This document shows, piece by piece, positions 19,301 to 56,400 of a stretch of 64,000 nucleotides of DNA (position 1 is the stretch's first letter; each line of letters begins with the position of its first letter). The notes under the pieces are model-generated. The model did no database searches and was not told the origin of the DNA. It saw nothing but the letters and a program-made list of their open reading frames with translations. The DNA lies in assembly GCA_001643675.2 (NCBI GenBank), contig LSRY02000036.1:930001-994000 (forward strand), read 5' to 3'. The translations under genes and the position numbers were made by a program. This stretch comes from Monocercomonoides exilis PA203. Lineage: Eukaryota; Protista; Preaxostyla.

Positions 19301-22300
19301 GTCTGCAGATGGCAACAAGAACAGCACAAATGGCACACAACAGCAAACAGAAGGAAAAGAAGGCAGAGAAAGTGAAAAAAGCAACATCCACAAAAAGAGC
19401 AAGCGTCGAGAGAGAGTGCGCCAGCTGAACAGCCATCTGAGTGGGCGGGTGATTGTGCGAGTGCGAACAACCGATGCGAAGTCTGAGGTGCTCCAGTCGC
19501 ACCCAGCCACCTTTGCCACCATCAGAGATCCAAACAACCCGACGCGGCTGAAGAAGCTGCGGCAGAGGGGATTCTTCTTTGAGGAGATGAGTGTGGTGTC
19601 TGATGTGCGGTCACCGCTTGTTCTCTCTCTCATCTCGCAGCATCCACTCCAGGTGGATGATACCAACTCCTTCCAGCTGTCACATTCTGTTGAGTTCCTG
19701 TCAGTGCCTGCCTTTGACAACCCCACCCACGACTACGAGCCCCACTCCCTCACACGCCCTCCTTCTGCCTCGACTGTTGCCTCTCTTCCCTCTCAGATCA
19801 CCTCCTTCATCACTCCCCAGATGCTGCAGAACCACCGCCTGTCACAGCCGAATATCACCGTGGGACATCCAAAGAAGTTCTCTGAAGGCACATTGATGTC
19901 TGTGGCTATCTCACTCGCCGATGCAGCTGTCCACGAAAATGCCACTTTTTTAGTCAGATTTGTGGATGTGCGGCGTGGCTATGCTCTTTCCATTGCAATG
20001 AGAGTGTCTTCACTCCCTCTTCTCCCGCGTCTGCCTGTCAATCCATCCACTTTTGTGCCTCGCCTGGCATTTGGTGTTGGCTACACCATAGCTTCCAGGC
20101 AGATGGCACACGCACCCACTCCGCCTGTGGTGGTGGGGCGTGTCGTGAAGGACAGAATGCGATACTGGGAAGACACAGCAGAAAAGGCAGACAACGAAGC
20201 CAATGAGCTGCCGCTGTATGCAGATGGGTTTCCGTATGAGAGACTGCCATTTGTGTGTGTGCCTGTGAAGAGCATATCATCTTTTGAGGATGAGCTGCTG
20301 GGGGAGACAGACGAAGGAGAGGATGAAAGTGACTCAGACGAGGATGAAGAAGGAAATGGGGTGAACCCTTCTTCAATCACGACAAATGAGGAAGCAGAGG
20401 CGAATGGAGAAAGCGCAAATGACAGAACAGCCAATGCAGGTGACCTGAAGAGTGATGCGCAGATTGCCAAACAGAAAGGGAAGACAACATCAAACGCACA
20501 GCCAACATCTTCTCTGTCATCATCATCCACTTCAATTGTTTCATCTTCCTCCTCTTCCTCTTCCTCTTCTGCCTCATCCACCTCATCCAGCAGAAAGTCC
20601 GATCTTCAGATCAACCCACCGCCCATCCAGTCACTCGAAACAGAAGAGTCAAGCGATTCCTCTTCCTCAAACAGAAATCTCTTTGCCAGTCTGTTTGAGA
20701 TGCTCCTCCCTTCCTTCCCTGGCGACATCGAAGTTGATCCTTCGCTCTGTCCTCCGCTCATCTCGTTTGACTTGAACATCTCTTCAGCCCCCCTTTCCTC
20801 TTTCCTCGCTCTTTTGTCTGCAACCGCCTTCGCCAGGCAGCATGGCATTGCTGTCTCAGACACTCGCGAAGTGCTCCGTCTGCGTGGTGCTATTCCTGCC
20901 CCTTCGTTCTCTGGCTCTCCTTCTTTCGCCTTCCTCCCTTCTCCCTCCGCTGCTTCGATTGCTCTGCTCCAGGATCCTGATAAGCCTCCTGCGTATTATG
21001 TGCCTTCGATGCAGAAGAAGAAGCAGAAGGGGAAAGAGAAAGAGAAAGAGAAAGAAGTTGGAGGAGCACAAAACGAAGGAGATAAAACAAACAAAACAGG
21101 TGCAGATGAATCAGCCAATCAGCTTTCTGATGCCAAGCTGCCTGCAAATGAACTGAGCTCATCTGTTTCTGATCGCAAAGTTCGAACACTCCCTCCTCTC
21201 CGCCCTGTTCCCCCGACTTATGCTCTTCCCCCTTCAGTCATCTTGTCTGTCTTCTACACCACGCCCCTCCCTCCTCCTTCAAGGGACATCTGCTTTGTGT
21301 CCATCATCAACCACCAAGGTGCCTCAGATTCGGTCCACTCATTTATTGACTCAACATTCCTGCTCCACCAAAGAGCAGCTGTTGCACTGGAGTTTTATGC
21401 ACCGGTTATTCAGCACGACACGAAGAAGACGGTGATTGAGAAGATGGCTGAGAGGATGCTGTCGACGCCAAAGGAAGGAGGAGGAGGTGGTGGTGGTGAG
21501 AAGGAGAGGGAGAAGGAGAAGAAAAAAGAGAAGAGGAGAGAGAAAGGAAAGGAGAAGGAGAAAGAGAAAGAGAAGCAAGAAAAGAGAAATGCAGAAGAAG
21601 AGACGAAAGAGAAGGCAAAGAGAGACAGAACAGCAAATGAACTGAATGAAAGAGAGGAGATCAACGAAGAGTCGTGTTCAGAGTCAGACGATGAGATTGT
21701 TCGGAGGCTGTTTCAAGAGAATGAGAAGGTGATTGCAGCACAAAAACAGACCTTTCTCATGCTGAAGGGAGTGACACTGACTGCTCTAATGGACGAGTCA
21801 TCTGACCAGGTTTGCTCTGAAAATGAACTCTTTTTTAATAATATTTGAGTTTTCTAATAAAAAAATCATATTTTTTTTCATAAATTCATTTTTTATTCAT
21901 TATTTTCTCTTTCTATTTCTCTCTCTTTATTTTGCTTGTTTTCCTTCAGTTCAAACTGCTTCGTCTGACCAACTGTATCCGGAAGATGTCTCTCTTCTGC
22001 CCAGCCATGCCCATCAACACTTTTGACGATGTTGCTTTTTCTCCTCTCCAAATTGAGTTTGGAGTTACTCCGCTTCGTTTCTCTCATCTTGCGCGGCAGC
22101 TGAGCTGGCTGAAGAGAGTGAAGAGGGGAGTGTATCCGAGCGATGGCTGTGACGAGATTGTGAGAGAGGAAGGGGAAGAAGGAGAGGATGAGATGGCGCA
22201 GATCGATCTGACGGATGTGCTGAGTGTGATGATGGAGATGAAGGCATCGAAGATCAGAAGAGAGAAAAGACATGTGAAGGAGATTGATGATGGAATGATA

Positions 22301-25300
22301 CAAGATGAAGGAGCGGATGGAATGGAACAGAAAATGAAAGAAGAACCAAAATCAAAAGATGAAGCTGAAACAGACAGCAAAACAAAAGATGATTTGAAGG
22401 AGACAGAAAAAGAGAAGGAGAAAGAGAAGGAAGATGGAAAAGACGATACAGAAGAAGACGAATATCTTTCACAGATGCTGCAGAAGGCGCAGGATGAAGT
22501 GGATCGGAAGGAGAAGGAGAGAAAGAAAGAGGAAACAAACAGAAGAGAAAAGCAACGAAAAGCACAAATGAAAGAAGAGAATGATTCATCAGAGGAAGAA
22601 AGTAGCGAGATGAAGCAGACAAAGGAACAGAAAAGCAAAGAAGGAACGAGCTTAATTCCAACAGGAATTCCATTTGATGAAATATCAACTCTGATTGAGA
22701 CAGTCAGCACACGCAAATTGGAAGACGAAGGAGAAATTCGAATGATTATTGGCAATTTGCAGAAGGACAATCAAAAGAAGAAGGCAAATGCAGACAAGAA
22801 GAAGATGACAAAAGAAGAGAAAGCGTCGATGCTTGCGATGGAAGTGGTTGAAAGAGGAGTGGCTGGACAGAAAGAAGAGACTGCAAATGAAGAAGGCACT
22901 GAAGAAGGGGAAGAGGAAGAGAATGAAGAAGAGGATGTTTTTGATGATATCTTTTCGAGTGATGCAGGGTGGGAGAGTGTGGAATCGAATGAAGATGAGC
23001 ATTCAAATGAACTCAGCACGAAAGAGAAAGTGGTTGTGACAAAAGAAGGAGAAGAAGGAGAAGGAGAAGGAGAAAACGAGGAAGATACGATGCGACTCTT
23101 GGAGACTGAGGAAGATGAAGATTATGTGTATGGCTGGTTTGCATGCAGTGATGGAACACAAACAAAGAAAAAGAAGATAAAGAAGAAGAAAATGAATAAG
23201 ATGTCTGAAGGAAGCAGAAGCAAGTTTTCTATTCTGAGAGGAGAAGACAGAAGAGTTGGAGTTGTGAAAAGTGTGGTTGATTCACATTCAACACTTTCAC
23301 TGCGAAGGAAGAGGAATGCAATGAACAGAGGGAAAGCAGAAGTGATTGAAGAAGATGGAGGGGAAGGGAAAGAGCTGAGACTGATGTATCCATCTTCGAG
23401 TGTGTCGTGTGCGCCTTCATTGCCAGATGCTGATGATCCCATTTGGAAAGACAAGGAAGAAGGAGAAATGGATGAGGATGAACTGAAGACGAGGAAGAAG
23501 AAGGGAAAGAAGAGGAAATCTCTGATGGGAGCAAACAATGAACAAGATTCAACAAGTTTGTTGGCGGAGCAGAGGAACGAAGGAACTGCTTCTTCTTTGA
23601 AGAAAAAGAGAAAGAAGAAGAAGAAAGGAAATGGCAATGGAAATGCAATAGCTGATCAAGGCAAAACAAGCATCACAGAAATGATCATCAAATCGCTCGA
23701 GGAGCAGGTCGAGGCAGAAACAGCAAGCAAAGCACAATCAGCTGCTGTTGTAATAAACAGAGACAAGCCTGTTCCTCTAATGCAGGGAGACCAATGGGAC
23801 AGCCAGCCACAAGAGAATGAGAGTGCAGAGGGCAACCATTTCTTGTTGGGAAGTCCTCAATCAGACAGCTTCTGCACATTGGCACAGACATCCACGCCTG
23901 CACTGAATCTCCTCTCCACTCCGTCCAATTCAAACACTCCCTTCTTGTCTCCTGTTGGCACACCCTCGTCCATCACCCCGCTGCTGGCACAGCCACACAG
24001 AAGAGCCATTTCGCAGATTCAGCTCGACATGTCCTTTGGGAAGGAAGAGCAGAATGGGCATTCGGGGGCATCTGGCAGTGGATTGAAGGAGTCAGACAGA
24101 AAAAGCGATGCTTTGCTGACGAAGTCTAAGAAAGTGATGCCTTCTTATGCCAAGTCAAGTGCATCTATGATGCCTGTGGTTAAGAAGTCAGGTGCACAGC
24201 TGCTTCAGGAAGAGGAGCAAAGGCATATTGAAGAACTGAAGGAGCAATTGGAAAAGGAGAGAGAGGCTGAAAGGAAGATGCAGGAGGAAGAGAAAGAAAG
24301 AGAGAGAAAGAGGAAAGAGGAAGCGGAGGAGAAGAAGAAGCAGGAAGAGTTGGCGCTGAAGAAGGCGATGCACGATGCGAAGAAGAAGTTTGAAGAGGAA
24401 GAGAGGCAGCGGAGACAGGAGATGGAGAAGATGAAGAGGGAGAAGCGAAAGAGGGAAGAACAAGAAAGGCAAAGAAGGAGGTTTGTGCAGCAGGTGCGGT
24501 CGAAGCTGACGGTGCTGATGGAGAATGAGAAGGCGAGCAGAGAAGACACGCTACAGATGCTGTCGCAGCTGGATGTGGATGCATACAGCATCCTGACGAA
24601 GGAGGAGATCATTCAGCAGGCAGAGCGGGAGAGAGAGACGCTGGCGATGACGATTGAAGATCTGAGGCAGAGGGAGGAGTGGATAGCAGAGGTGACGAAG
24701 AGGCAGATGGTAAAGGTGGATGAAGACGTGTCGCACATCCGCCACCCGAACGACCCGACAGAAGAGGAGCTGTTGGAGATGAGGAGGAAAGAGAGGATGA
24801 GGAGAAGAGAGCTGAAGAGGAAGAAGATGCAGGAGCGGAAGGAGAGGCAGCTGCGGAAGGAGGAAGAGAAGTTGATGGAGGAAGAGACGAGGCTGCGGCT
24901 GATGTTCTTCAAGAAAGTCGAAGTAACTGGCACGAAAGTGACGAAGATGGAGATGGATGCGTGTGATCAGAGCGCACTGGCCATTCCAACACAGGCAGAA
25001 GAGGACAACATGAAAGCATTAGGAATACCAATTCCAGAGGAAGATGAGACAGTCAGACGAGCAGGCTTTGTGAAGACACGTCTGCGGATTATGGACAACC
25101 ACGACGATCACTTCCAGACGAAGTCGAAACAGGAGGTGACATTTGTGGACACGAATGTGCTGCTGATTCCGACGTCGGAGGAGATGGAGGAGGAGGAGAG
25201 AATGTTTATGGGGCTGCCTATTCCTGATGATGAAGGAACAGAAACAGAGGAAGAGACAGACCTGAAGGATGAAGACACGCTTGAAGACGAAGATGCTCTG

Positions 25301-28297
25301 AAGGATGGCAAGAAGAAGTCGCCAATGTCTGGCAGTGAGACAGGAGCGAGTGACCTGCTCTACACAGACCCAGCCACACGGCAGCGGTCGCGGGTGATGA
25401 GGAAGGCAAAGGAGACGATGATACCACCGGAACTAGAACAGGAAGTGGACTACATCACAAAGAATGCCCAGGCACGTGCATCGAACAAAGGAACGTTCAG
25501 AACACCGCCTTATGCGAATGGGGCAGCGTTTGGGATAGGCGGGGCAGGTGGGGCTGAAATGGGATATGCACGGCAGCCACCTCTGATGCCAGAGAGGCAC
25601 TTTGAAGAATACACACAGATGCAGACACTGCTGGAGCAGCTGCGGCTGAACATGCAGAATCTGCGGAAGGAGAACGCGATGCTCAGAATCGAGGTCACAT
25701 CGTCTGCTGCCCCAACTTCTGCAAAACGAGGATCGAAGAATTCATCAAAGCTCGGTAATTCTTCTTCCTCTTCCTCTTCTTCATCGTCTTCTGTGATGAT
25801 GCTTGGCTCGCAGACAGAGCGTAAACAGCGGAAGATGGGCGCCTCTGCCTCAACAAACAGGCTCCCCTCAGTTGGAATCTCTGATGCTCCATCTGTTTCC
25901 TCATCAACATCGTCACTTGGCTCACAGACAGAGCGGACACTCAACCGCTCAGCCACATCAGCATCAATTGGGATGAATGCCAAGCTCAGACGCCCTTCTT
26001 CATCTTACTCGTCGAGTCGCACGTTTTTGAGGACAGCCAGCGAAAGGAAGCTGCGGACGCCTCTTGGGCAGATGAAGAAGAAGGGGAAGAAAGGAAGGAA
26101 AGAAGGGCTCTTCAGAGAAGAAGAAGGAGGAGCTGCAGGGAATGAGGAGGCAGGAAATGCTGATGAACAGCAACTCACTGAACGCTCAGCAAGCATGCCT
26201 GGCGGTGCTATTTCGCGAACAAACACCATTTCTGCAGGTGAAAAGTCTCCTCATTCAAAAGTCGAAGAGAATGAAGAATTTGGAGGGAACAATGAAATAG
26301 TGTGGAATGGCAATGAACAAGTGGCAGACAGCGCAATTGATGATGGATCGAACTGGGCTGTGTCCAGAACAAGACCAAGAGAGAGCGAGCATCCAATGGC
26401 AATACAGGAAAACAATGAAATGCAGGTGAATGAAAGCAGTGGAGTGGAAGAAACAGAGACACTTCCTGTGATTATGTCTGATGCTGAGTTACCGATCACC
26501 CAAAGCAACTCAATGACAGACACGATGAATGGGAACGACACAGACATATTTGTGCAGGAGGCAGAGAAGACAGATGATGTGAAGGGCCTGCAGTACATTG
26601 AGATTCCTATAGATGAGATACAAGAAGAATCGAGCTCTGAGAATGTGTGGGGCGTGCCTGAAGAACACGACATGCCAACGATACAAAGTGACAGCAACCT
26701 TGAGCAAGCAAGCAGAGCTGGGTATGAAGAAGGAGGAGAAAGAGAAAGAGAAAGAGAAAGAGAAGAAGTGGAAGGAGAAGTGGAGGAAGGCACAATGTTT
26801 AGTGTGCAAGAAAGCGAGGCAGCAGAACAGAATGCAATCGGAATCCAAGCACTGACAGACCAAATAAGCGAAGAGACAATCAGAGAAGTGGACGAAGAAG
26901 AGGAAAGAGAGCATTCAGAGTCGCACTTCCTTGACACAGACACCAAACAGACATCACTGGGCAGCACAATCGCATCAATTGAACCAGAACTCAAGCTGCC
27001 GCTGATGAGCCAAATGGGAATGGCCTTTGAAGACTTGGAGGAAGTCGACGAGGAACTTGAGAATGTGTGTGAGAATGTCACATCTCCACACAGCACATCT
27101 GCTGCTGCCCTTCCGTCGCAGATGCTGCCGTCTTCCTCGTCTGCGCTGCTTCCTTCCACAACTGCCCGTTCTTCGGCTTCTCTTCAGCCTTCGCTGAATC
27201 CTCCGCCTCTGCTCCTTCCACCTGCTGGCTCGATGGCTGCTTCGACTGACTTTAAGCCACAGCTGCTTCAAATTCCTGGGCTGGAGATGGACGGAGCACC
27301 TGCCTCTTTCGTTGCCTCCACATCGACTACACCAACATACTCATCTTCAACTGGCTCATCTTCCTCTTCATCAGCATCTTCATTGCAGCTGCCTGCCAAT
27401 CCTCTTCTATCAACCAGTCCATCTGGATTTACATCTCCCTTCGCGTCATCCAGCTCTTCAAGTGCATCTCTTTCGTCGCTGAATCCACCAGCCATTCCGA
27501 TTGAGCCACCGCTGCCGTCACAGGAGATTGGTGCATCGCTTGCTCCCTTCACTCCGTTTGACATAACAGCTGAGATGATCAAGCAGGCTGCCCCGCAAGA
27601 GCAGGAGAGGCTGAACCAGCTGCTGAGCATCCAGGTGGAGACGCTGTCGATCATCGACCAGATCAAAAAGATGCTGAAGGAGAACAAAGAGCTCCAGCAG
27701 AAGCAGACACAGGCAGCGAGTTTGAGCGAGGAGGAAGAAGAGAATGAGGAAGAAGTGGCAGAAGAGGAGGAAGTGAAGGCAGATAAGGACGAGCCAACTG
27801 AAGCAAACGAGAACGAACAGCCGACAGAGACTGATGAGACCGAGTTTGGGATCAAGTCAGAGATTCTTCCCAGATCAAAAGGGGCAGACGACTTTTTGGC
27901 GCATCCGAAGCGGAAGATTCTGCGGCAGGCGTCTCTTGCATCGATGCCACGCGGCCTGTCGATGTCGCAGCTGGCAGCGCTGTCATCTTCGAGGCGCCCT
28001 CCAACGACAGACGCGGAAAGGAGGTGGAAGAAGGGGAGCGATGCGGTGAACAACCTGATGATGGGGCGGCCTGTGTATCAGATTGAGGTGGTTAAGCCGG
28101 GGGAGGAGCAGACTGGCGGAGAGAAGGGGAAGGAGAAGGAGAACGACAGAGGAATCGCTTCTGACAGGCAGAGGCCGCATGCAAGGCATTTGAGGTCAGA
28201 TTCTGTGTCTTCTATAAAATCGGAGTTGAGCTTTGCGAATGGATCGCTTTCGACTCGGAGCATGATTTCTCAGCGCTTTCACATGAAAAAGAAATGA
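13381..28297 (+). CDS. Giant (~4,876 aa) low-complexity/coiled-coil protein with probable N-terminal C2 domain, 4 exons
   Basis: Exons 13381-13521, 13620-13743, 13792-21809 and 21950-28297 all splice in frame at GT..AG. C2-like pattern: TDISPITFKPRYRRDCFDFIVPTSFIRKETALFIIMFKNE...ILGAAIISLSGI. Confidence 0.8.
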
Positions 28298-34659: not shown

Positions 34660-34928
34660 TTTCACACAAGTTCAGTTATGGACTAAGAATTGTTTTTAAC
34701 TATCTCAAACAAGTGTTTTTCCAGAAGATATTATGTTCAAAAAAAAGATTGAATTGCTTTTTACCACATTTTTTAAGTTTTCAAATAACTACTGTTTTGA
34801 GTTGATGTTTTTGTTTTTTATATATCAATTGTGGAATAAATTTTTTTATAAAAAACATTTATCTTTTCACATTTTTCGAAAATGTTTGTTTTTCAAAAAC
34901 AAGTGAGAATTTTTGCTTTAGTTATATT

Positions 34929-37900
34929 ATGGGAGTGCTGTTTGATTTGATCGAAAAAAGTATTATTTCGTCCCGTGATTAACTTGTGCATAAAAGAGTT
35001 TTGTCTTAATGAGTCAAAGAGATGATGACCAACGTTCAGTGAGCAGATCCGTTTCATCTGACTCCTCAACTGCAAATTCAATGGCAGTTGTGAAGTTTGA
35101 TGGAATCGATCATGCGTTATTTTCCTTGTTGTATACACTTCACCGGGTTTGATATCTTATTGTTGCCACTTGTTTATTGGAATATACTAAATTGATTGAA
35201 TTTTTAGGAACCAAGATTTCCCCAGATTTATTGGATTATTTGCATATTATTCACCATTATTCAATGTGTCGGGCTTTCTGTTTATTTTAACAAATGGCCT
35301 TTGGCAGAATCGTTTCGCCGAGGGGTTATTGAATTTTTTGGGTATTTTGTTATTTCTTTACGTTCATTATGCATAACTCTTTTATTTGATAGATATCTAA
35401 ATTTTTCGATTTCATGGACAAATTCAGTATTTTCCCTTGTGATGACAATTATTTGCTCAGTATTTGTGCTATGTTCCGTAATTAGTGTAGTTTTATCTTC
35501 AATCTTAAATAAAAGAGAAAACAGCAAATTCGCATGGGTTTCATCAGTTGCGAATTATTTAACAACTCTTGTGTCGTTTCTGTTTTACTTGCCTTGCTTG
35601 AACACATTTGCAGGAAACTTTTTATGTGTTGGAACGGGCAAGGATTTTGCAGAAATGGATTGCGAAAGAGCGGAAAGAATGGCTATGACAATTATATCTG
35701 CATTTTTAGCGTTAATATTGATCGTTTACGGATTTGTAGTTCGGCTATTTCTATTCCAGCAAAATACCAAAAAAGGAGATATATTTGCTTGTCAAACCGG
35801 AATATACAATACACTTGTTTTGGTACTAACATCAGTTATGACAATTATTTCAGTGTTTTTGAGTGGAACACCAATCGTTATACCAATAGTTGGGTTTGCA
35901 AATTTGAAAAAATAAACAGAAAAACATTAGAAATGTGTTAATTAATGAATATCATTATTCAAAGTCATCATTTTTTAAATTTTTTTAATACAATAAAATT
36001 TTTTTGAATCAATAATTCGTTTTTTGCTTTTTTATTTTTTTTTTATAGCGCTGTGTGCTCGTTCATATTATTTATAGTATCCTTCTTTGTCCAGCCGTTT
36101 TTCCATCCGTCTGGAAATGCTCTGTGGAGTGCCAGTTGGGCATTGACTTTTTGGATGTTTGTGATGGGCATAGTCGCTGAAGTTATCGACACCGAAGTCA
36201 CCTGGCACAATGTCGTATTCTGGATTGTGTGTGCCTTAGGAGCATTGGGCGTCCCAGCACTGTTTGGCCTGTTGTGCATGAAGCGAGCGAAGTCGATGTG
36301 GGCGATGCGGCCAGGCGAGAGCATCCCAATTGTTCGTGGCAACAAAGAGCAGATGATGGTTCTGTCTTCCATGATGCCCCAGCAGGTGTCCAACCCAACA
36401 ACATCGTCTGCTCCAACCACCATCAGCGTTTCCAATCCACCAATCTCTGGCTCATCAAACTATCTTTTTGGAAGCAACACAGCTAGCCAGCCAACTCCAG
36501 CACCCAACCCGCTCAGTGCGTATGGTGCAGTTGTAATAACTCCAAGCTCAATCGCTGGATCATCTACGTCGTCTACCCAACAGTCTTCAGCAATAGCACA
36601 GCCTCTGATTCCTACGGCATCTGGCACAGGAACTGGACCATCTCAAGGTCAGTCACAGCCGCAGTCACTTTTGCTGCCTCCCACATCGTCCTCTTCCGGC
36701 ACAGGAGCAGCATCACACAATTCCTCATCGAATACACTACCAACTGTAGCTACACCACAGCCTCTAATTACCCTTCCTCAAACATCATCAGCATCCAGCT
36801 CCTCAAACTTGGCGCCATCTGCAAGAAGTGAATCACCTCTTAATCCACGACCAAGCACCGGAAAGGAAGAAGAAACTTCCGCTTTGCACATTGCGACTCC
36901 TTCTTCTGCATCAGCATCCGTTTCAGCCTCGGCGTCTTCTTCGTCAATTGGCACTGCATCAAATGCTCACTCAGGTGCAGCTGGCATTTCTGGTGCCTCA
37001 TACAACATGAATGGAATGCCTCGTGTTTCAGCCGGAACAACGCTATTGGATCCAATGAACAACACACCCCGCACAACACCAGCAACAACACCTTCTTCCG
37101 CTGGTGTGCAAAAGACATCTCTGTTCAGCAGCTGTGCATCGTCAGTTACACCAAGACAGCCTGGACAGCAGATTCAATCGCCTTTGCTGCTCAGCAGCTC
37201 GACTCCTTCATCTGCTGGGTCGTCATTCTCAACCATCGGCCAGCCAGCCTATCCGATGTCCACTCTCAACTTCCAGGGCGCCCCTGCCTCATCTGCCTCG
37301 CTCATATCGCCAAAGTCCTCTCGTTCGACTGTGCAGGGAATGGGACAAAGCGGATCTCATCTGTCGAATGTGGGATCCAATGTCCGACCGAGCTCTCCAT
37401 CAGCAGCAAAGCCACTTCTGCCACCAAAGAAGCTGCCAAAGTATACTTCAGTATCACAGATACAATATGCTATCCGCTATTTGTCTGACCGAAAGCTGAG
37501 AAAGAACCAGAATACGATTACACTTGCAGAGACACTCCTGAACATTGGGCAGAAGAAGTTTGGGATGTCATCTGGAATGTGGATGACAGTAGCACTGTTC
37601 CATCTGTCGCACACACAAAACCAGATGAAGATGGGTGATGCACTCAGAACATGCAGACAGTGCATTCCAAATGTGATTGAACGCTGGTTGATCTTTGCCT
37701 TGTTGCACGACATGGAACGAAAGTCCTCCAAGAACATGTCCAGCGGCGGAGCTAACTCGCTCAGTGCGACATTCAGACTGGACTTTGAAAAGGCTCAGAA
37801 GGCACACGCTGTGTCTAGAGCGTATCTGCAGCAGGCGTATCTGATGCTAGCAAAGCAGCATTTGGATCTGGAGAGGATTATGATCTTCATGGACAAGGCA

Positions 37901-40900
37901 ATTGAGAATGAGGAGGAATCAAGGGAGATTCTGTCGAAGCTGCTGAAGCAGTATCCGCAGTCAACGCAGGTGCTGAGAGAGATGGGAGCACTTCTGAGAG
38001 ACATCTACCGCGACGACGACACAGCCACGCTGATGTTCACAGAGGCCAATCTGATTGAAGAGGACACGCTGACATCGCAGGGACAGTCGCATTCAGATGG
38101 GCAGAGCAGATACAGCAAACGGTCTTCGCTGGCAGGAAGCTCACTGGCTGGTGAGAGTCTGATGAGTGGAGGAGTGAAGAAAATGAAGAAGAAGAGGAGG
38201 AAGAAGCGCTCAGGCAGAACTAACGGAAACAAACTGACATTGGCGGAAGACAAGGCTAAGCTGCTTCCAATGTTTTTGCCAACCATTGTAGCGTCTCTGA
38301 TGATTATGATTGTCTGCTTTATTGTGTCGTTCGTGTTGAGTCAAACAGCATTCTCGACAATTCAAACCAGCGCAACAAGTTTGAATGAAGCAACAAACAT
38401 TCTCGTGAACTTCCTGATGAACTATCTGTATACAATGTATTTTGCGTTAGTCAAGGAGTCAAGTGATCCAACCACTTCATACACATTTTCAGGTGTAGAT
38501 TTCATTCCAAGCGATGAACGACTGAATCGAGAACTTGAATCACAGATGATTACCATGAATGAAAAACTAGACACGTTGTATCAGCAGACGAAGTATGAGG
38601 AGCACTTCAATCTGATGGAATATGAATACATTCAGCAGATTATGATAGAATACGATCGAAACGGTTCTGGCAGCTTTTTCAAGGCAGTCTGGAGTTCTCC
38701 TGTAAATATCATTGATCTCATCAACACTGTCTCTAACATCAATAGTGATCTGCTGTATATGTACGATAGCAAGCCTTCGTTTTCTTCGTGGCATTACTAC
38801 ATCCGTGCCAATACTCCTGTGAATGCTGTTGAAGCAATGAAGGGACTTGCCATCCAATACTCAAAATATGCACAAACACAATCAGATTCCATTGTCATTG
38901 CTATTATCATCATGGGCATTGTATCATTGGTTGTACCACTTGTGCTCACGAACTTCCAGTTTGTGATAACAGTCAGAAAGCTGAAGAAGGAGCGTCATGA
39001 AGTGTTCCTTCAGATATGCTCTGTACCAAAAGAGCAGATCTTGAAGCTGAAGCAGCGTTTGGATGAGTCTGAACAAGGAGAAGACGAAGAGTCGCTGACA
39101 TTCGGAACGATGGGATCGACTAACGTGACAGATGCAACGAAGACTGATCAGTCAGCAGTCACTGAAGACGATGGGAAGCCAGACAACCTGAAAGAAATTG
39201 TGGAAGTGACCAACTCTGAAGAGATAGAAAAAGGAGCCAGAACAACACAAGCTGAATCCAGTGGTGCTTCTAACAATGCTGGAGGAAGTTCTCCAAGAGG
39301 AGGAGCAAACGGATCAGGAGTTGAGATGTCACTTGTTCCACATGCACAGCCTGATGATTCCTTCAAGAATGATTCCAACATGATGGGTGCAGGAATGATG
39401 AACAATGGAATGATGAATAATGGAATGATGAACAGCGGAATGCTTATGAACATGGGCTCCAACTTGCAAATCGGTGCAGGTGGTCCAGGAGGTGTTGGCG
39501 GAACGACATCGTCAGGAATGCTGATGGGAACAGGAATGGGCAACATGGGTGCAAATCAAGCGTCTCAGTTCTCACTGGCTTCAATGGGGCAGAACAACAT
39601 GGCAGGAGGAATGCTGGGAATGTCACCAATCACATCTCCTTCTTTCACTTCGCCTCGACAAACGCCTCGTATTCTTCCACATGCAATGCAGCAGGTACAA
39701 ATAGGACTTGCTTCTGGTGCTCCATCACCTCAACCAGGAATGATGAATGGTATGAATGGAATGAACGGAATGAATAGTATGGGAGCTATGAACATTTCTG
39801 GTGATCTGAGCAAAATGCAACCGATGCTGCAGCCTCAAATGTCCTCATTCATTGCACCAGTCGGCAGTGATCGAATGGGTGGAACTGGAATGGGGATGGA
39901 CCTCGGTGACGACTTAGATGGATCTTCATCTTCATCGACAGACATGGAGAACGGAGATAGCAAAAACAAGACAGGCACAGATGACGCAGCAGGTGCACAA
40001 GGAGCAGCACAAGCAAACAATGCAAATCAGCAAGAGATGTCTGAAGAAGACGAAGAAAAAGAGGAACTTGCAGAGCAGATTAAGAAGATTAGCCACTTTA
40101 TCCCAACCTCTTTTTGGATTCGTGTTCTTGTGGGTGATATTGACATTATCATATTTGGTGTTGCCTTTTTGGTTATCTCCGTTGTTTCCCTAAAGACAAC
40201 TGTGCGATTCAACAATGGTATATTCACAGCTGGTTATCGTGAGGCAATGATGTGTACAATTGCTGTTATCACCATTAATCTTGGTTCTCCTTCTTTTCCT
40301 CCAATGATCGGAGAAGGTCTCACTTTCAACACAACCTTTGCGACAAATCCTGTGTGGACTAACTTGACTCACTTAAGCGACGATTTCTACACTCAGCAGA
40401 AATTATTGGCTGCTCTCTTTGAATTTTACACCGCACTGAATGACAGGGCAAACATGGGATCAGACTTTGGGGAATCTGCTCGGACGCATGACGATGCAGT
40501 GGATGAACTGGAAGTCGATAAGATTGTGGCATCTGGAACAAAAGCAAAAGATTTGATGATGACCAAAACGGACTGCTTGATGGAAGACAAATCCATTTGC
40601 TCTGAAATGCCTGGCAGAATGAAAGGTGTAAATGGGAACTTCACTGGTATCGAAGCTTTGCAGAGCATATTTGTTCAGAACTGCATTGCACTGATTAATG
40701 AGGCTGATCCAGTAAATGCAATTATCCTTAACACATCTGGTGTCCAAGTGGTCAATTCGTTGATTATGTACGATCTCTCACAAGGTCTGAAAAGTGTGCG
40801 TATGTCAGTGAGAGAAAGCCAAGTTGCATCCATATCACAGTTTTCCGTGTTTCTGTATCTGTTTTTCATTCTCGGCATCATTTTCACTTTTGTGGGATTC

Positions 40901-41755
40901 TTTGGCTGTCTGTTTCCAACAAAGACAGTGCTGTTCCGTGTGGCTACCAACTCAAGCAAAATGCGAGATTTGGATCCGTCAGTCGATCTGGCAGAGAGAA
41001 CAGGTATGGGCGCTGCTGGATGGAAGGACGAGTATTCATGTGATTGCATCAGAATGGACAAGGAGCATCAGCAAGTGCTTCTTTCTCTTGCCCTTGTTTG
41101 CTCTGGAATTGACCCAGAAATTGTGATCAAAGATCAGCTTGCTGAGATCAAGGAAGGAAACGATGAAGAGTTCAAGTCCATTGCAGAGTTGGTAGAAGAG
41201 AAGTGCTTGAAGAAAGAAGCATCTGCTGGAGGAAATGTGGCCATGATTAAATCGAAACAAGGAGCAGACGATAAATTAGATTCTGCCGATTTGAAAGAGA
41301 AGGACAATGCAATCTTGAAGGCAGTTATGCTTTTGGTCAAGAAGACATTCGCAGCACTTTCAGACGAAGAGCATCTTATCAAAAAATACAAAATGCCTGC
41401 AGATCATCGCTCACGTCATTATTCTGGCCATGCTTCACTTGTCAAAAAGCTCCAGACAAACATCCTGAACATCGAGAAGGTTGCAAAGAAAGGCAAATCA
41501 CTGATGGCATCACAGGCACAGCAGCTGATGCAAGTGTATGTGGGATGGCTTACTGATCATGTGGGGAAAGTTGACAGGGAGTTGACAGCACTTCTTGTGG
41601 GAAAAGCACCTTCGTCTGAAATGGAAAGAGATGTGCGCCTTAACCAGTTCACCGTTCCTCCTTCGTATTCGCAATTTTTGGAATCAGAGAACGCTTCACT
41701 TCAAGAAAAGAGCTTGTTTGAAAAGATGCTGAAAATATTGCATCTGAACGAATAA
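34929..41755 (+). CDS. TmcB/TmcC-like multi-pass membrane protein with C-terminal hemerythrin-like domain (~2,181 aa)
   Basis: Exons 34929-34974, 35040-35146, 35208-35893 and 36049-41755 are in frame. N-terminal TM bundle; TPR-like YPQSTQVLREMGALLRDIYRDDDTATLMFTEANLIE; two TM-loop-TM modules; hemerythrin motifs WKDEYS..MDKEH, SDEE, HYSGH, WLTDHVGKVD. Confidence 0.85.
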
Positions 41756-47383: not shown

Positions 47384-50300
47384 ATGTTAAGGGTATGATA
47401 GTGATCTGCATTCAGATTTGTTTTATTTATTGGTTTGTAGCAGATGAGTGATGTTGATTACGCATCGCGGCCGCGTAAGATGACTCCTACGGAACGTATA
47501 TTGTATGATAGTTTATATATTTTTTCGATTTGGATATGCATTCATTAATAATTTCAATCGTTATTAAATAAGATATTCACGAGAAGAAAATGCACTGAAA
47601 AAGTGGGAACAACAACAAGTCGAATGGGATAAAATTCGTGATAGACTTTCTAGAAAGACAGGAAAAGTTTGCTTTCAGTACATTTGCATTGTGACATTTT
47701 TTTTTCAGTCAATTGATGCTTTGGCAATTACTGATGCTGAACGTTTTCGAGAAACGTTAGAGGCTAGAAAAATTGCAGAAAGCGCGAGAACAATGTGGGT
47801 TTGTTTTCGTTTTTTTATCATTTTTCATTTGAAAGAACAAAAATTATTTGAATTTTATGTTTAGGATCGAAATGCTTCAAATTTCTGGGAAATGACTCTT
47901 CGAGATTCAGATCAACGCTATGCTAAAGTCGGAGAGTTATATGTTAAAATTAAAGAAACTGGTGCTCCTAGGTTTTTGATAAAGAAATAAAAATTTTTTT
48001 AAACAAAAATAATTTTCTTTTTTTTTATTGAAAATGGATTAGCGAGGTTGTTTATCAAAGAAGTGGATCACAGGTTGCAAGGTCTCGCGCTGGTACATCT
48101 TCATTTAGTTCCACGCAAGCCAGCAGAGCTGGATATCCCGGATCATCGTTTGAAGGCGAAGCAACAACAACGACGAATGCCACCTTATCTTCAACAGCAA
48201 AAGAGCGACAACGCCAACGTATTGACGAAGCAGTTGCGCGGAGGCATTATGGTCTCGACACGCTTCCCAAAGAAGTTCTGTCGCGCATTCACAAACGAGT
48301 GAAGGATTCGAAGCTTGTTCTCCCAGACAGCAGCGATCTGAGCTCCTTAGAGATACGCGGGACATCCGCATTGAACTCTACAAGAGGGTCTTTTTCTGAG
48401 CCAGGCAAAGAGAAGATCGACGAAGAAGGTGGGAGAGGCGCTGAGAGCAGGGTTCCATCTGGGCTGCGGATGGCGGAGCTGTCTGAAACAGAGAACGGAG
48501 AGGAAGGGGAAGAGCTGAATGAGGATGAAGAGAAGCAGAAGGAGAACGGCCGGTCAGAGGAAGGAAAGAGCGAAGGGACGATCACGCCACACTCGCTACA
48601 CAGGCATTCTGGCTCAGTTGCGTCGACGTCGCCGCTTCGGAAGCAGGCAGCTCCGACGCAGATAATCGAAGTTTCCACGCCGCACCTTCTCTTCGATGTG
48701 CCGGCAGGGACGCTTGCTGTGCAGACGATTGCTGTGCGGAACAACGGGGACTCTGCTGTCTTCTACAACTGGGAGCGCTGCGGGTCGGGCTCGTCGCTGC
48801 CGCTGAGCGACTGGCGGGTGTTTTCGCTGGACAGAACGAGAGGGTCGCTTCTGCCGGGCGAAGAGCAGCACTTCCACTTCTCGTTCAAATGCAACACACC
48901 TGGCCTCTTCATCGACCACTACTATCTGCTCTGCCAGCCTCCCCCGAATGGCCACTCTGACCCTTTCTCGCTGTCTCTGAGGGCACATGCGCGGCTGGCT
49001 GAGCACTCTCTCCTGAAACAGCAGAAGATGAACAGAGAGTTCGAGCAGTGTGTTTTGCGGAGGATTGTCAGAGACATCATTTGGGACGTTGTGTACGATG
49101 TGGATGCGCTGATTGGCCCAGAAGTTCCGTTTGATCTGCCTCGCGCGCTGTTCATCCACATGAACAAGGGCCATCTCCCTCGCCTCTTCCACACCCCGTC
49201 TGCACTCGAATATTGGCTCCGCCTTCAGCAGCTGCTCCACCGCGCCCTGCAGCTTCCGCAGGAGCTGAGATTCTGGGACTATCGGGTGGACTCACTGGAG
49301 TATCTGATCACACTCATCCCAGACGCCGAGTGCAGAGAGGCCACAGAGCATCTGTTCAACCAGCTGGTGAATTACTCGGCATTCCCATTCACAGCAGCAC
49401 TGGCAGACGTCGAAGGAGAGATGCCTCCGAATGACATGTCGCTGGCTGAGAAGGCTGCTGAAATGCAGGAGATGAAGAAGAAGAAGATGGGAGAGGAAGA
49501 CGCTGATAAGAACAACAGAAACAATTCTTCTTCTTCTTCATCGTCATCATCTTCATCATCATCTACATCTTCTGCATATCCTCAGAACAACAAGCCAACA
49601 CATCGTCCACTTGGAAGTGCGACCACTTTTGATCGTATGCTCCATTCTCTTCTTTGAACAAAACATGTAATTTTTTATTCATTCTGAATTTTTTATTTTA
49701 ATTTTGATTGATTTTATCTTTCAATGCTTCTTATTTGTTTATTCTTTTATTTATTTGTTCTCTTCTAATTTCTCAGCCAATTCGTATGATGAGAACGATG
49801 CTGAGCTGAATGTGTCCAACGTGGAGCATTTGGAGGAGCTGGTGTCGCCATTCCAGTCAGAGCTGTCCTTCATCCGGCAGCTTCTGATCGATGTGGTTGA
49901 TTCTGTGCCCCGCCACGCCATTCTCTCTCAGTTTGAGGCAGAGCTGAACAGCGCCCAGGGGAATTACTCTGCTCTCCACCCGACAAACGCCCCAGGGCAG
50001 GACACATCGCCTGCTGCGTATTATTTGAGGGGAGGAAAGAGCTCTCTCAACCGCCCACTGAAACTGGCACCGAAAGTGGATCTGTTTGGAGGTGAAGGAA
50101 ATGGGGGAGAGAAGAGCAATGAGAGAGAAACAGCTGGGAATGAGGGGAAGACGAAAGGGAATGAGAAGAAAGAGGGAGAGAAGGGGAAGAAAGAGGTGGA
50201 GAAGAAGGGAGGCAGGGCAGCTGGGGGAAAGGGGAAGAAGGATGCAGAGAATGTGAAAGGAGGGAAAGGAGGAGGAGGAGGAGGAGGAGGAGCATCAGGA

Positions 50301-51389
50301 GGAGCAGCAGATGGGGTGAATGGGAATGAAGACAGCGCAAATGGTGGGTCGCAGCTGAGCGGGCTGCGAATTGCGGAATTGTTGGAATTGAGGCAGTTCA
50401 GGAATAATCCGAGACACACTCCAGTTTATGCACAGCTGCTGACAGACGAGAGAAGGAAGAACTATTTGGAGATGATTGGCTGTGAGGAATGGCTGATTAT
50501 GGTTTGTGTTATGATCAATCAGGTGAAGATAGAATAATATGAGCGATGAAAGTATTAAAAGAATGATGTTATGTGTTCAGTAATTCTTTCTTTCTTTCTT
50601 TCCTTTTTTTTTTTTGACTATTTTTCATTGCCAATTTATTATCTTTGATATATTTCTTTTTGTATTTCAATATCATTTGTGGTGTTTCAGACTGACAGCA
50701 CAGTTGCCCCAGTCACAGGAATAGCGAGTGAATTTGACAAAGAAGGCTCATCAGCCAATCTTCCACCGTCAGATGCATCTTCCATCCCAGCTGCATTGAG
50801 AGGGAGTGTGACAGCACAGACAGCAGCTGCCAAAAAGCAGTCGCTCAACAACTCTGTCTCCTTCCAGCTGCTCTCATCAACTGCAGTCACACCTTCTTCC
50901 TCTTCCTCTTCCTCTTCTTCATCGGGAAGGAAGATGCCATTTGGAAGTGAGCAGCTGAGTGGAGAGAAAGAAGAGGCAGATGGAACAGACATTGCAAACA
51001 GAGAGAATATCAATGGAACAACAGGCACTCTTCCAAATGAGCACTCAGGAACAGCACTCACACTCATCCCAGAAGATGAAATTGATGCTGTGTGTATATT
51101 TTTTTTGATTTATTAACATTTATTTTAATTATTTTTTCTTTTAATTTAATTAATTAATTAATTAATTATTTATTTCATTTATTTCATTCACTTCTATCTG
51201 ATATAATACTCCTCTTATCTGTCTTCTCAGTCTATGATTGATCCAATGATTTATGGTGGACCGTTCAATCCATTTATTGTGCCACATGAATTCTTCCTCT
51301 CATTCTTTGCTGAAAGAGGCTTCCCAATGCCATCCACACCTTTCTCTGGAATACCAAATCCATCTCCTTCATATTCATCCTCCTCCTCA

Positions 51390-51427
<38 letters not shown>

Positions 51428-52826
51428 CACACCAATGCGTCCATTGTCTTCTTCCTCCTCCAATGCCACTTCACTCATTCCACCCCGTTCTGACTCCCCC
51501 TCTTTCCCCCACCGCACCAATGCTGAATCTGGCCCAGCTACAATCGGCGCCTTTTTGGCAGACAACGCCGATGCTGCTGCGAAGATGCCTGGAGGCAGCG
51601 ATGATTTGGAGAGGAAGGAGAAAGAAGAGACGGAACAGGCACTCCGCCAGCTGGGGCTGACCTATGACGATCTGCAGGAGAAGGAGTCGCTCAGATACTT
51701 CCCTCCCTTCAGCTACGAGCAGTGGGACAGCTTCTACACACAGATGAATGCGATGCTCACTCAGCAGATGTCTTCTTCCACAGCATCTCTCTCCTCCTCT
51801 TTCTCTTCCTCGTCGAATGCCTCTGTCTTTGTCTTCCCTCCTGTTCTGCATCGCATCCACTATCTCATTTCTGACTGCTTCAACAAGGGTGTCAGCGTGG
51901 AGTCGTTCTGCCGGCTGTATGATGCCTCTGTTGGGTGTGGGGTGCTTGGAGAGGAAGATCTGAGGCTGCCTCCATCTGTCGGAGGCGATGGAGACGAATG
52001 GCTTGTGCCGAGGAGGATGAACGAGGTGGCTGGGGAAGGGATGAGAGGAGGAGGGGCAGGCAGTGGAGAAGACAGAGATGGCAGTGAAGAGAAGGGAGGA
52101 AGGGCATCAGGAGACGGAGAGGAAGAAGGAGAAGGGGAAAGGAGGAGAAGAGGTGCTCGCTCAGATGCAGGGGACGATGATCTGAATGCGATGGACGATG
52201 AATACGAAGACGAGGAAGACGATATGAATGGAGGAGGAGGAGGAGGGAGAATGCGGAGAGGAGGAGATGGCTCATCCACATTGCAAGACGACGACATGAG
52301 CAATGATATGACAGACGAGGGAGACAACGATGGAGAAGAGGCAGGCAGAAGAGGTGGAGCGAACAATCGGCTGATGCGCAGTGTGGACTCGCTGGGTGAC
52401 TCTGTCTCGAGTGACGGCGCCTTCAGCCAGTTTGCTCTTCCACCGCAGCTGAGCAGCCTGCAGCGAGTGAAGCGGAGGCAGCAGCTGTGGGCGAGTGGGC
52501 ATTGGTGCAATGCATTCCACGGGGCGCTGCTGGGCTGTGCACTCAGCGTGAGAGACGAGGTGCGGGAGATGTTGTCACAGACAGGCCTCATTCTGGGCAG
52601 TGTTGGCGGGAGAGCGCTGCCCGAGACGATAGACAGGGCATTCATTGAGGTGGATGCGCTGGTTGACGGGTGGATGGCAGAGAACGGGATAGATGAGAAT
52701 GGAGAGGGAGGACTGGATGGAGGATTCACAATGGGCGACATGGGATGGGGCGATGATGGCACAGGAGATGGGCAAATTGAAGACGGAGGAGACGGATTCG
52801 ATGATGTTGGTGATGCTGACTTATAA
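47384..52826 (+). CDS. MYCBPAP: MYCBP-associated protein-like (ciliary, ASH/Ig-like domain), multi-exon
   Basis: N-terminal REENALKKWEQQQVEW..., and core QTIAVRNNGDSAVFYNWER...FSLDRTRGSLLPGEEQHFHFSFKCNTPGLF. ORFs 48299, 49704, 50679 and 51234 join through in-frame GT..AG introns. A 9-nt first exon is proposed at 47384. Confidence 0.78.
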
Positions 52827-53469: not shown

Positions 53470-56400
53470 ATGGGCAAACAAATAACCACAGACTCTTCTA
53501 AACTTAAAAGTGCCTCAATTGTTCAAGAAAAAAATGTTGATGATGACTTGCATCTTCAAAATTCCAGTGAAATTCAAAGCGTTTGTGAAATTTGACATTA
53601 TTGAAAATATTTTAAAACCATCACAATTTATAAACAATATATCGTCGCTTATGGAACATATTTTAACAGGAAAATGCAGCGCCACAGATAAATGAAAAAA
53701 GTGCCACAAAGAAAGTCGTTCTTTTAGGATTGTCATTTTGTTGCATCTTTATTGCGACACAGACATCTTTGAACTATATGACCACTTTCTTTGCTGATTA
53801 TGCATCAATTGTTCTGTGCCTTTATGGTGTTGTGAATGCGATTTATGGATTGCTCTGTCCTGTGGTCAAGCATTATATTGGAATTATTGGCTCATTTAGA
53901 GTAGCTGCAATAGCTGGTCTTATTTTTGTTGCTATGTGTTTATTTTGCCTGATTGTCGTTTTCACACAACAGTCCCTTCCGACGTTTGGAATCGTTCTTC
54001 TATTTATTGGAGCAGTATTTTATGGAATGAGTTATGCAACACTGTGGTTTTGTTGGTCAGCATATATGGATGAAATAACGACTATTGATACTAGAGGAAA
54101 ACTTTCTGGATTGTTTTATGCAATATTTTATGCAAATTCACCACTTGGAAACTTTTTGGGATCTATTTTATTTTCTGTTGGATTTGAAAAGTATCAGATG
54201 CTTATTGTTCTGACTGCATTTTGTGTGATCGGAGTTGTTCTTATGTTTTTTGTGAGAACAAACAGCAAGAAAGACGAAAAGCACGAGCCACAAAAATCTT
54301 CATCCACAAAGAATGAAGCGAATGATAATGATCCAGAGAAAGGAAGAGGCACAGGCGGTTCATCTAACATCAGAGATGCAACTGAATCTCCAGCTCCAAA
54401 GCAAAACGATGCCTTTGTACGAAAAGATTCGATGAAAATGTCAACAACGTCTTTAAAACTGAAAGGCAAGCATTATGTTTCATTGAGTGACTTCGATGGA
54501 ACTGTTCCTGTTCCTGCTCATTCACATCTCGCATCTTCATCCACTGCCTCAAACTCTGGCTTTTCATCTTCACCTTCTTCAGCTGCTTCAATTCACAATA
54601 TGTCAACTGTATCTTCATCACCACATGTTTCTTCCTCATCTTCATCGACATCTCCCTCATCTCCATCTGCTGCTGCCACATCATCTCTCAGACCACCTCG
54701 TCCAACAACACTTTCTTCTTCTTCGTTAGCACCTCATTCGCCTTCCGTAACTCCTCAGCCATCAACACCATCTCTGGCGCTTAATCCACTAGTCAACCAG
54801 AAGTCTCACTCGACACTTCCTGATGCTCTGATTGATGAAGATCGAGAGGGCGATGCAGATGCTGATGGAGAAGGAGAAGGAGACCAGCTGGTTGTGGCTG
54901 TGGTGGGAAAGAGCAGAAGCAAGAAGAGAGCATCAAATGCAGCAGCAGTTGTGGGGAGGAAAGACAGTTTGGCTGACACTTCAAAGGAAAGTGCAATTAG
55001 AGCTGAAGACGAAGACGACGATGACGAGGATGAAGATGAAGGAAACGATGCACAGATAGTTGATGCAGACACACAGAAGAAAGAAGAACAGGTGATCAAA
55101 CAAGAACCTGAAGCAGAAGACGAAGACGATGAAGATGACGACGACTTTGAGGATGATAGAGACAGAACAGATGAAAATGGAATGGTTGATGAAATTGTGG
55201 CAGATGATGATGAGGAGCTTTCAGAAGAAGACGACGATGATCAGAACAATCAGACCCTCCGCCTTCCTTCTTCATATTCAACATCATCGCTGAGCAGACC
55301 CAAACTCGGCCCAGTATCTCCTGACCCAGCTGAGTCACCGGCACCCGAATTCTCACCGAAGGAGTATTTCCGCGACTTGTGGGAGATTATCCTCACACCT
55401 GGCTCATACCCAGTCTGCCTGGCATATTCGCTGTATCATCTTATCGGATGCTATCTTGTGTCTGTGATGACAAAACATCTGACACCTGAGCAGCAGGGGC
55501 TGTTTGTGGGAATTGGCTTTGGACTGAGTGGGATCTTTCTGATGATCGGCTCAATCGCATTTGGCCACATCGTAGACAAGTTCAGCAAGCGGACATCGCT
55601 CTTCATAAACTTTGTGGTTGTGATCCTCACAATCATATCAGCATGGGTCTTTCACATTGTCAGTCCTTCTCTTCCTGGCTTCAAAGTGTTCATGTTCTGT
55701 TTGACACTTTGCTTGTATGGCTTTGAAAACAGCGGATTGGATGTGAACTTCTTCTGGCTGAGCATCGAGACAAACAAGATGAACCCAATGGCCTATTTCC
55801 AGTACTGCCGCGTCTTTTCAAACGGAACTTATGGAATTGTTGGTCTGATTTCACAATGGCTGTGGAACGAACCATTCTTCTTCCTCATTCTGAACATGTT
55901 TTTGACCTTTGTTGTTATGCTGCTGATGTGGAACACCGATGTTACTGTGTTCTCATTCTCGAAGATGACAAAGGAGGCGCTGATCAAAGAAATAATACGT
56001 GATCCAACTCAGCTGCAGCTTACAGAAAGAGACGTAGAAACGATTCCAATTGTGGCATCAGTTGCATCAGTGCACCATCTGCAGGCAATGGAGCGCCTCA
56101 GCTCTCTTCAGCACATTACATCAATGAAACGTATCGAAAGAGAGTTGAGTCATCAAATGCTACCAAAAGAAGGAGGCACTTTGAGCAGGTCGAACACACG
56201 AGGATCAATGCAACGATTGGGAAGTGGCATGATGGGAACGAATGGGACGATGTCTTCTGCATCGATGCTGGCAATGCGAGGAAGCCAGTCGCAACTCGGA
56301 GGATTAGGACCGTATTACAATCCATCCTATTTGTCACTCGCCAGACAAGGAGCACTCAGCTCGTCCACTCTGAGCATGACATCACTGCACCAGCAACAGC

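Follow-up and report, generated by a model that had tools for sequence, protein, structure and literature searches.

How oxygen, redox state, or iron is sensed in eukaryotes that have no mitochondria is the question behind the analysis of a gene of the gut protist Monocercomonoides exilis, first annotated at positions 34929 to 41755 of the window, i.e., the whole 64,000-nucleotide stretch of DNA that was analyzed. The first-pass annotation of this gene described a TmcB-like receptor ending in a hemerythrin domain and proposed it as a sensor of O2, NO, or iron.

Gene model and expression of MONOS_15734

A database search with the last exon revealed the M. exilis protein MONOS_15734 (P0001, 2,159 amino acids) as its match. 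A reading of P0002 as the orthologue in a different species was rejected, as this protein is MONOS_884, a paralogue within M. exilis. Joining of four exons on the forward strand gave a translation identical to P0001: exon 1 (35009-35146; ATG at 35009, 46 codons), exon 2 (35208-35341; TM1), exon 3 (35393-35893; TM2 to TM6, with the conserved Pro158 and the Cys169/Cys181 loop identified in the alignment), and exon 4 (36049-41755; residues 258 to 2159 and the stop codon TAA at 41753-41755). The three GT..AG introns of 61, 51, and 155 nt were spliced in the RNA from four runs of one study; because the in-frame 51-nt intron was removed in all four runs, read-through of this intron was rejected. The RNA contigs, the 5' ends of which lie at 34962-34972, matched the genomic sequence without differences to the end of the stretch compared (34850-40800) and extended beyond it, and 93 to 94% of the sequence words of the complete gene were present in the RNA runs. 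MONOS_15734 is a real, intact, and transcribed gene, in agreement with the original description of a single spliced gene ending at 41755. The start proposed at 34929 was rejected. The ATG at this position opens a 17-codon open reading frame with a stop at 34982 and lies upstream of the RNA contigs, and the length of ~2,181 amino acids given before was therefore too long by 22.

Receptor architecture and topology

The number of transmembrane helices (TMs) in MONOS_15734 was determined from hydropathy and alignment. The N terminus comprises a bundle of eight TMs (35226-36283, residues 53 to 336), for which a structural model was generated from the Blattamonas paralogue P0007 in place of MONOS_15734 itself (pLDDT 82). 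Comparison of the P0007 model with the Protein Data Bank (PDB) revealed no solved fold for the bundle, the best match being partial (Z 8.6), and the sole Atlas neighbor of the bundle was a hypothetical protein from a ciliate. The structure and Atlas comparisons gave no support for a GPCR, a channel, or a transporter. The bundle is followed by a cytosolic linker rich in Ser, Pro, Thr, and Ala (36308-37411, residues 345 to 712; 25% Ser), which from its composition is probably disordered and the length of which is very variable among the paralogues.

The next segment is the conserved cytosolic TPR region of the TmcB/TmcC type (37427-38071, residues 718 to 932). In MONOS_15734, this region scored 28.6 bits with the Pfam family TPR_TmcB (PF25474; gathering cutoff, 27), compared to 42 to 57 bits in the paralogues. 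It shares 51 to 58% identity with oxymonad paralogues, and in the Atlas it matched TmcB clusters from chytrids and from parabasalids (0.97/0.91). Between the TPR region and TM9 there are only 66 low-complexity residues rich in Ser and Lys. Analysis of hydropathy, alignment, and hhalign comparisons predicted a first module (38273-39070, residues 1000 to 1265) consisting of TM9, a helical ectodomain, TM10, and an amphipathic helix. A low-complexity cytosolic linker rich in Gly, Met, Ser, and Asn (39077-40075, residues 1268 to 1600) connects it to a second module (40091-40915), in which TM11 and TM12 flank an ectodomain with the invariant pair Cys1767/Cys1775 and four N-glycosylation sequons. The two modules represent an internal duplication (hhalign E value, 4e-5), and the Atlas neighbors of the second ectodomain were from ciliates, chytrids, and euglenozoans. 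A short, probably helical linker (40916-41020, residues 1881 to 1915) leads from TM12 to the N-terminal Trp loop of the hemerythrin domain. No PAS, cyclase, or kinase domain was scored in MONOS_15734 with Pfam or NCBIfam.

From the 12 TMs, the invariant Cys pair and the four sequons in the second ectodomain, and the matching published topology of the Trichomonas transmembrane adenylyl cyclases (TMACs) (PMC2914791), the TPR region and the terminal domain are both predicted to be cytosolic. The architecture in the first-pass annotation was thereby borne out in its main elements: the N-terminal TM bundle, the Ser-rich linker, the TPR-like domain (placed at ~37440-38065), the two TM-loop-TM modules, the TmcB-type scaffold free of cyclase, kinase, and PAS domains, and a hemerythrin domain as the terminal, presumably cytosolic module.

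Fold of the C-terminal domain

The C-terminal domain (W1916 to L2107, 41021-41596) matched the hemerythrin model TIGR02481 with an E value of 7e-11, which is under the curated cutoff. Searching the PDB with a family profile revealed the hemerythrin domain of DcrH (DcrH-Hr) as the best match (E value, 7e-14), followed by bacterio- and myohemerythrins. An AF2 model of the domain was obtained with a pLDDT of 93, and its structural alignment by VIA again placed DcrH-Hr at the top (Z 14.0, 1.9 Å over 133 residues), ahead of the Methylococcus hemerythrin (Z 12.9) and an invertebrate hemerythrin (Z 11.6); for a helical bundle, Z values of this size are only modest, but sequence and structure concur.

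Pfam PF01814 gave no match in MONOS_15734 even at an E value of 10, and a PDB search with the single sequence likewise missed hemerythrin. Foldseek with the domain model returned nothing at an E value of ≤0.001, although DcrH was found with a probability of 0.98. The likely cause of these missed matches is a charged helical insertion of ~60 residues between helices A and B (41111-41269), which was modeled as two helices and a loop. The insertion extends the spacing between the His25 and His54 positions to 96 residues, compared to 36 in DcrH and 36 to 38 in many paralogues, and it is variable in sequence and length (spacing, 83 to 111). The model and the alignment also revealed a family-specific helical tail at the C terminus (41597-41752).

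From sequence profiles and the structural model, the terminal domain is assigned to the hemerythrin fold, and it belongs to the lineage of bacterial O2-binding hemerythrins. The proposed C-terminal hemerythrin domain was thus right with respect to the fold, for which the AF2 model and the structure comparison gave a four-helix bundle closest to DcrH-Hr (Foldseek alone was not significant), but wrong with respect to a full hemerythrin signature, from which MONOS_15734 deviates by an Ala residue at the His54 position and by the ~60 extra residues.

Ligands of the predicted metal site

O2-binding hemerythrins share the motif H-HxxxE-HxxxH-HxxxxD, and canonical O2 binding requires both His ligands of the second iron (Fe2) (PMC9388753). 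Comparison of the seven ligand positions revealed six conserved residues in MONOS_15734, H1931, E2031, H2048, H2052, H2095, and D2100. The set for the first iron (Fe1) is complete and consists of H2048, H2052, and H2095 (corresponding to His73, His77, and His101) and the bridging residues E2031 and D2100 (corresponding to Glu58 and Asp106). The Fe2 set is represented by His1931 (corresponding to His25) and the two bridging carboxylates; the second Fe2 His is replaced by Ala2027 (codon GCA, 41354-41356) at the His54 position. The register at this position is secure because intact paralogues read HFSDEE where MONOS_15734 reads ALSDEE, in addition to the alignment with DcrH. A sequencing error was rejected, since a His codon would require a change at each of the three positions of GCA and this His is also absent from paralogues in three genera. 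Loss of both Fe2 His residues does not apply, since His1931 is present in MONOS_15734 and His25 in 27 of the 28 relatives without His54.

Alignment also revealed a new His residue, His2044 (position 69; 41405-41407), one helical turn before His73. Its equivalent was found in 20 of the 28 His54-less rows, in all 10 rows of the MONOS_15734 clade, and in none of the five intact rows. An equivalent of Asp1923 was found in 21 of the 28 His54-less rows, compared to none of the five intact rows. Judged from the known topology, His2044 and Asp1923 are probably situated at the bottom end of the helix bundle, distant from the His54 site. The association of both residues with the loss of His54 is confounded by ancestry, and there are three apparent secondary losses without the new His. 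Asp1923 was not taken as a replacement for the missing Fe2 ligand, since Asn is found near this loop position in DcrH.

Because one of the two His residues on the O2-binding iron is absent, O2 binding of the DcrH type by the MONOS_15734 domain appears unlikely. The ligand set weakens the original proposal of an O2/NO sensor with a canonical di-iron site and leaves a role in sensing iron or redox state plausible.

Paralogues and phylogeny

The alignment comprised 33 full hemerythrin domains of the oxymonad type, of which 28 lacked His54 and five were intact; the search profile had been built from two His54-less members, which skewed the sample toward that class. Although the 28 His54-less domains share a mean core identity of only 35%, E58, H73, H77, H101, and D106 were each conserved in 28 of 28 and H25 in 27. 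Position 54 was occupied by ten different residues, mostly small ones (A, G, S, or C) in the MONOS_15734 clade and often Val, Thr, or Met outside it. The hydrophobic pocket, represented by the equivalents of Trp97, Leu98, Val102, and position 28, was kept. This pattern fits selection on the metal site, with His54 being dispensable. The same His54-less pattern was found in P0059, P0060, and P0064, which had been retrieved by means of the TPR region alone and without hemerythrin.

In a tree from which the insertion and column 54 had been left out, MONOS_15734 was positioned within a starred clade of 10 rows (support, 96/97) from M. exilis, Streblomastix, and Blattamonas, all of them His54-less. 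The state of His54 required two to four changes on this tree, the deeper branch order of which is poorly supported. A supported clade of three genera and six nearly invariant ligands indicate an old, remodeled site and not decay, and the His54-less state has been conserved over a long time. Intact paralogues with all seven ligands occur on the same scaffold (MONOS_10517, MONOS_3906, and MONOS_6676), as does a paralogue without both Fe2 His residues (P0049).

All named matches with the full architecture were from oxymonads and included at least seven M. exilis genes; free-living Preaxostyla were absent among the named matches. The remaining named or locatable matches were two bacterial hemerythrins and fragments from JGI metagenomes. 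The clade patterns matched nothing in contigs of prokaryotic genomes or of JGI metagenomes; the broad alignment was too variable for patterns.

In the searchable literature, outside which most subscription journals lie, no paper on a fusion of the TmcB scaffold with hemerythrin was found; the searches led only to the genome paper, and the supplements of the Preaxostyla paper do not mention hemerythrin. A description of such proteins in Spironucleus papers was not supported by the literature search. The receptor architecture is undescribed in the searchable literature; the hemerythrin annotation of some members is already known, as MONOS_10517 and three Blattamonas genes of the family carry the label "hemerythrin" in NCBI. 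The earlier view of an undescribed architecture therefore stands insofar as the searchable literature contained no paper on the fusion. MONOS_15734 is not a one-off gene and belongs to a multigene oxymonad family with some members already labeled.

Proposed function and alternative explanations

The explanation that we favor, at somewhat less than even chances, is that MONOS_15734 is a 12-TM TmcB-type receptor in which the cytosolic hemerythrin domain is a remodeled metal site reporting iron or redox state and not an O2 carrier. In this mechanism, Fe1 would be tightly bound and the Fe2 position labile or open to solvent, and filling, oxidation, or ligation of the Fe2 position would report the level of cytosolic Fe(II) or the redox state. 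By analogy, a labile Fe2 position would be supported by Escherichia coli YtfE, in which displacement of one His impaired the second iron (PMC9268430). As the redox signal in DcrH travels via the N-terminal loop (PMC9388753), the change might reach the membrane modules, as well as the TPR region, by way of the N-terminal Trp loop and the post-TM12 linker. As there is no enzyme domain in the protein, the TPR region is the sole candidate for an output, and the ectodomains could provide a second, extracellular input. The following points weigh against this explanation. The kept His25 is superfluous for a purely single-metal site and fits a still-occupied Fe2, the domain occupies the position of the output cyclase in TMACs, so that it could be an output instead of an input, and the sampled domains are skewed toward His54-less members.

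Retention of His25 in 27 of the 28 domains and of the hydrophobic pocket would suit a di-iron sensor of O2, NO, or anions, with the His54 cavity taken up by water or an exogenous ligand as in a natural cavity mutant. Fe2 with two open positions would then bind O2, NO, or a small ligand, with fast autoxidation as in the bacterial hemerythrin sensors. The usually small residue at position 54 within the clade and the intact seven-ligand paralogues on the same scaffold point in the same direction, but the canonical O2-binding motif requires both Fe2 His residues (PMC9388753), and Val, Thr, or Met, frequent at position 54 outside the clade, would fill the cavity; this sensor is unlikely, although it deserves serious consideration. 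The location of the domain at the cyclase position after a short post-TM linker (PMC2914791) allows for a structural metal (one Fe, Zn, or Mn), with the domain, insertion, and tail serving as an output for protein docking in place of the cyclase that TMAC-like ancestors had, and with the signal coming from the ectodomains only. The large charged helical insertion and the conserved tail, the existence of a class without both Fe2 His residues (P0049), and the possibility of a different site made by His2044, Asp1923, and Cys1924 agree with such an output. It leaves the retention of His25 unexplained, however, and an insertion with a spacing of 83 to 111 residues makes a poor conserved docking surface, and we consider it improbable.

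A membrane-tethered redox enzyme with a peroxidase-, catalase-, or NO reductase-like activity at the open Fe2 site is a distinctly remote prospect. DcrH-Hr was converted to an H2O2-using oxidase by changes in coordination that included an added His (PMC9388753), and the MONOS_15734 class gained a His; in addition, hemerythrin is listed among the genes for protection from oxygen stress in the M. exilis genome paper (PMC6759080). The scaffold of 2,159 amino acids, its two ectodomains, and the many diverged paralogues nevertheless resemble a receptor family and not a detoxifying enzyme, and His2044 is predicted to lie at the end of the bundle opposite Fe2. Least credible of all is a decaying, metal-free pseudohemerythrin. 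The missing Pfam hemerythrin match at an E value of 10, the TIGR02481 score under the cutoff, and the blank Foldseek result at an E value of ≤0.001 could be taken for decay, but the six ligands are nearly invariant in three genera, the gene is intact and transcribed, and the insertion explains the weak scores.

As judged from the ligand pattern, MONOS_15734 makes a weak candidate for O2 sensing in the classic sense but represents an old, conserved third ligand class, distinct from the intact class and from the class that lost both His residues. The wider proposal, which is rather doubtful, is that oxymonads expanded a receptor family with graded hemerythrin sites of seven, six, and five ligands. 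The six-ligand class (His54 lost, His69 gained, insertion) would then represent a new metal-site chemistry and a membrane-based means for a mitochondrion-free eukaryote to sense iron or redox state in the cytosol, tuned unlike the intact, O2-type paralogues. The intact, six-ligand, and five-ligand paralogues form a natural series for the role of each iron ligand, and the domain of ~250 residues with its high-confidence model is suited to expression alone, which makes the claim directly testable. In at least one M. exilis gene annotated "hemerythrin," MONOS_10517, the hemerythrin forms the tail of a multipass receptor of this family and is not a free protective protein. The stress-protection reading of hemerythrin in the genome paper is thereby questioned, provided that MONOS_10517 is the gene meant there.

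Comparison with known receptors and hemerythrins

Trichomonas TMACs form a large paralogue family with six to eight N-terminal TMs, a conserved cytosolic domain of ~300 amino acids, four to six TMs around two extracellular domains, and a cytosolic C-terminal domain (PMC2914791). MONOS_15734 shares this layout, but the C terminus is a class III cyclase in TMACs and a hemerythrin domain in MONOS_15734, where no match to a class III cyclase was found at the C terminus, which models as hemerythrin. The link to TMACs consists of the published layout and one parabasalid TPR_TmcB Atlas cluster and is a likeness by description.

With the TmcB/TmcC family (PF25474; Dictyostelium TmcB, chytrid and ciliate proteins, and P0074), MONOS_15734 shares the TPR region, look-alikes of the ectodomains, and the scaffold; it differs in lacking a PAS domain after the TPR region and in the added C-terminal hemerythrin domain. 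In P0074, a TmcB protein from outside the oxymonads, a weak PAS match follows the TPR region, and the protein ends after the last TM without a C-terminal domain. This indicates that the scaffold can exist without an enzyme, and hemerythrin may therefore replace PAS as the cytosolic input. Among the metamonads sampled in a previous study, tmcB-family homologues were found only in Carpediemonas (PMC8516963); in contrast, oxymonads carry many proteins with a TPR_TmcB domain.

The methyl-accepting chemotaxis protein (MCP) DcrH from Desulfovibrio vulgaris provides the best profile and structure match and the same N-terminal Trp loop, and both DcrH and MONOS_15734 are membrane receptors of anaerobes with a cytosolic hemerythrin domain at the C terminus. 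In its presumed mode of action, MONOS_15734 resembles DcrH, on a scaffold of the TMAC/TmcB type. DcrH differs in its unrelated receptor scaffold, seven ligands, and MCP output, whereas MONOS_15734 lacks His54 and a recognizable output domain and has the ~60-residue insertion and the tail. FBXL5 and BRUTUS are eukaryotic iron/redox sensors with a four-helix, di-iron, hemerythrin-like domain and ubiquitin ligase outputs. Their likeness to MONOS_15734 is a functional analogy only, since the ligand sets differ and neither was among the PDB profile matches.

The closest comparison is provided by the oxymonad family itself, the members of which share scaffold and domain with MONOS_15734. Intact paralogues have seven of seven ligands and no His69, whereas MONOS_15734 has six of seven and His69; compared to the members without both Fe2 His residues, MONOS_15734 retains one of them, His1931.

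RNA contigs at the 3' end of MONOS_15734

The region 3' of the stop codon of the receptor gene MONOS_15734 (window 41756 to about 43050) would be covered by RNA contigs in three of the four runs. These contigs reach approximately 2,250 letters beyond 40800, i.e., about 1.3 kb past the stop codon if they are colinear, and the contig of the remaining run ends near 42070. Provided that the contigs are colinear, this RNA would belong either to a long 3' UTR or to a neighbouring transcript.

Other genes and long ORFs in the window

Analysis of the forward strand revealed two adjoining very long ORFs with strong purine skew, at 13827-21848 (2,673 codons) and 21932-28297 (2,121 codons). Neither ORF has a Pfam match at an E value of 0.001, and the two possibly form a single giant gene with a short intron between them. 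Exons of the MYCBP-associated protein family (PF14646, E value 9e-22) at 48299-52826 (+) probably belong to a flagellar gene. The ORF at 53730-58937 (+; 1,735 codons) matches the Major Facilitator Superfamily in two places (PF07690, E value 6e-17). Ordinary MFS transporters are much shorter, which points to large insertions or to a fusion in this ORF. A uracil-DNA glycosylase superfamily ORF (PF03167, E value 8e-29) is located at 60116-61255 (-).

Receptor-family and TmcB-type proteins

Four proteins of M. exilis and Blattamonas, P0068 (MONOS_10517), P0034, P0049, and P0055, are annotated simply as "hemerythrin." All four are receptor-family members of 1,300 to 2,000 residues. Two of the Blattamonas proteins lack His54, and one of these also lacks His25.

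The non-oxymonad TmcB-type gene P0074 (L001:3001-8709; eukaryotic assembly GCA_037189325.1) is intronless and encodes 1,902 aa, with a weak PAS match C-terminal to the TPR; it carries no C-terminal domain. TmcB-family homologues were described as absent from sampled metamonads except Carpediemonas (PMC8516963), whereas many oxymonad proteins score above the TPR_TmcB cutoff.
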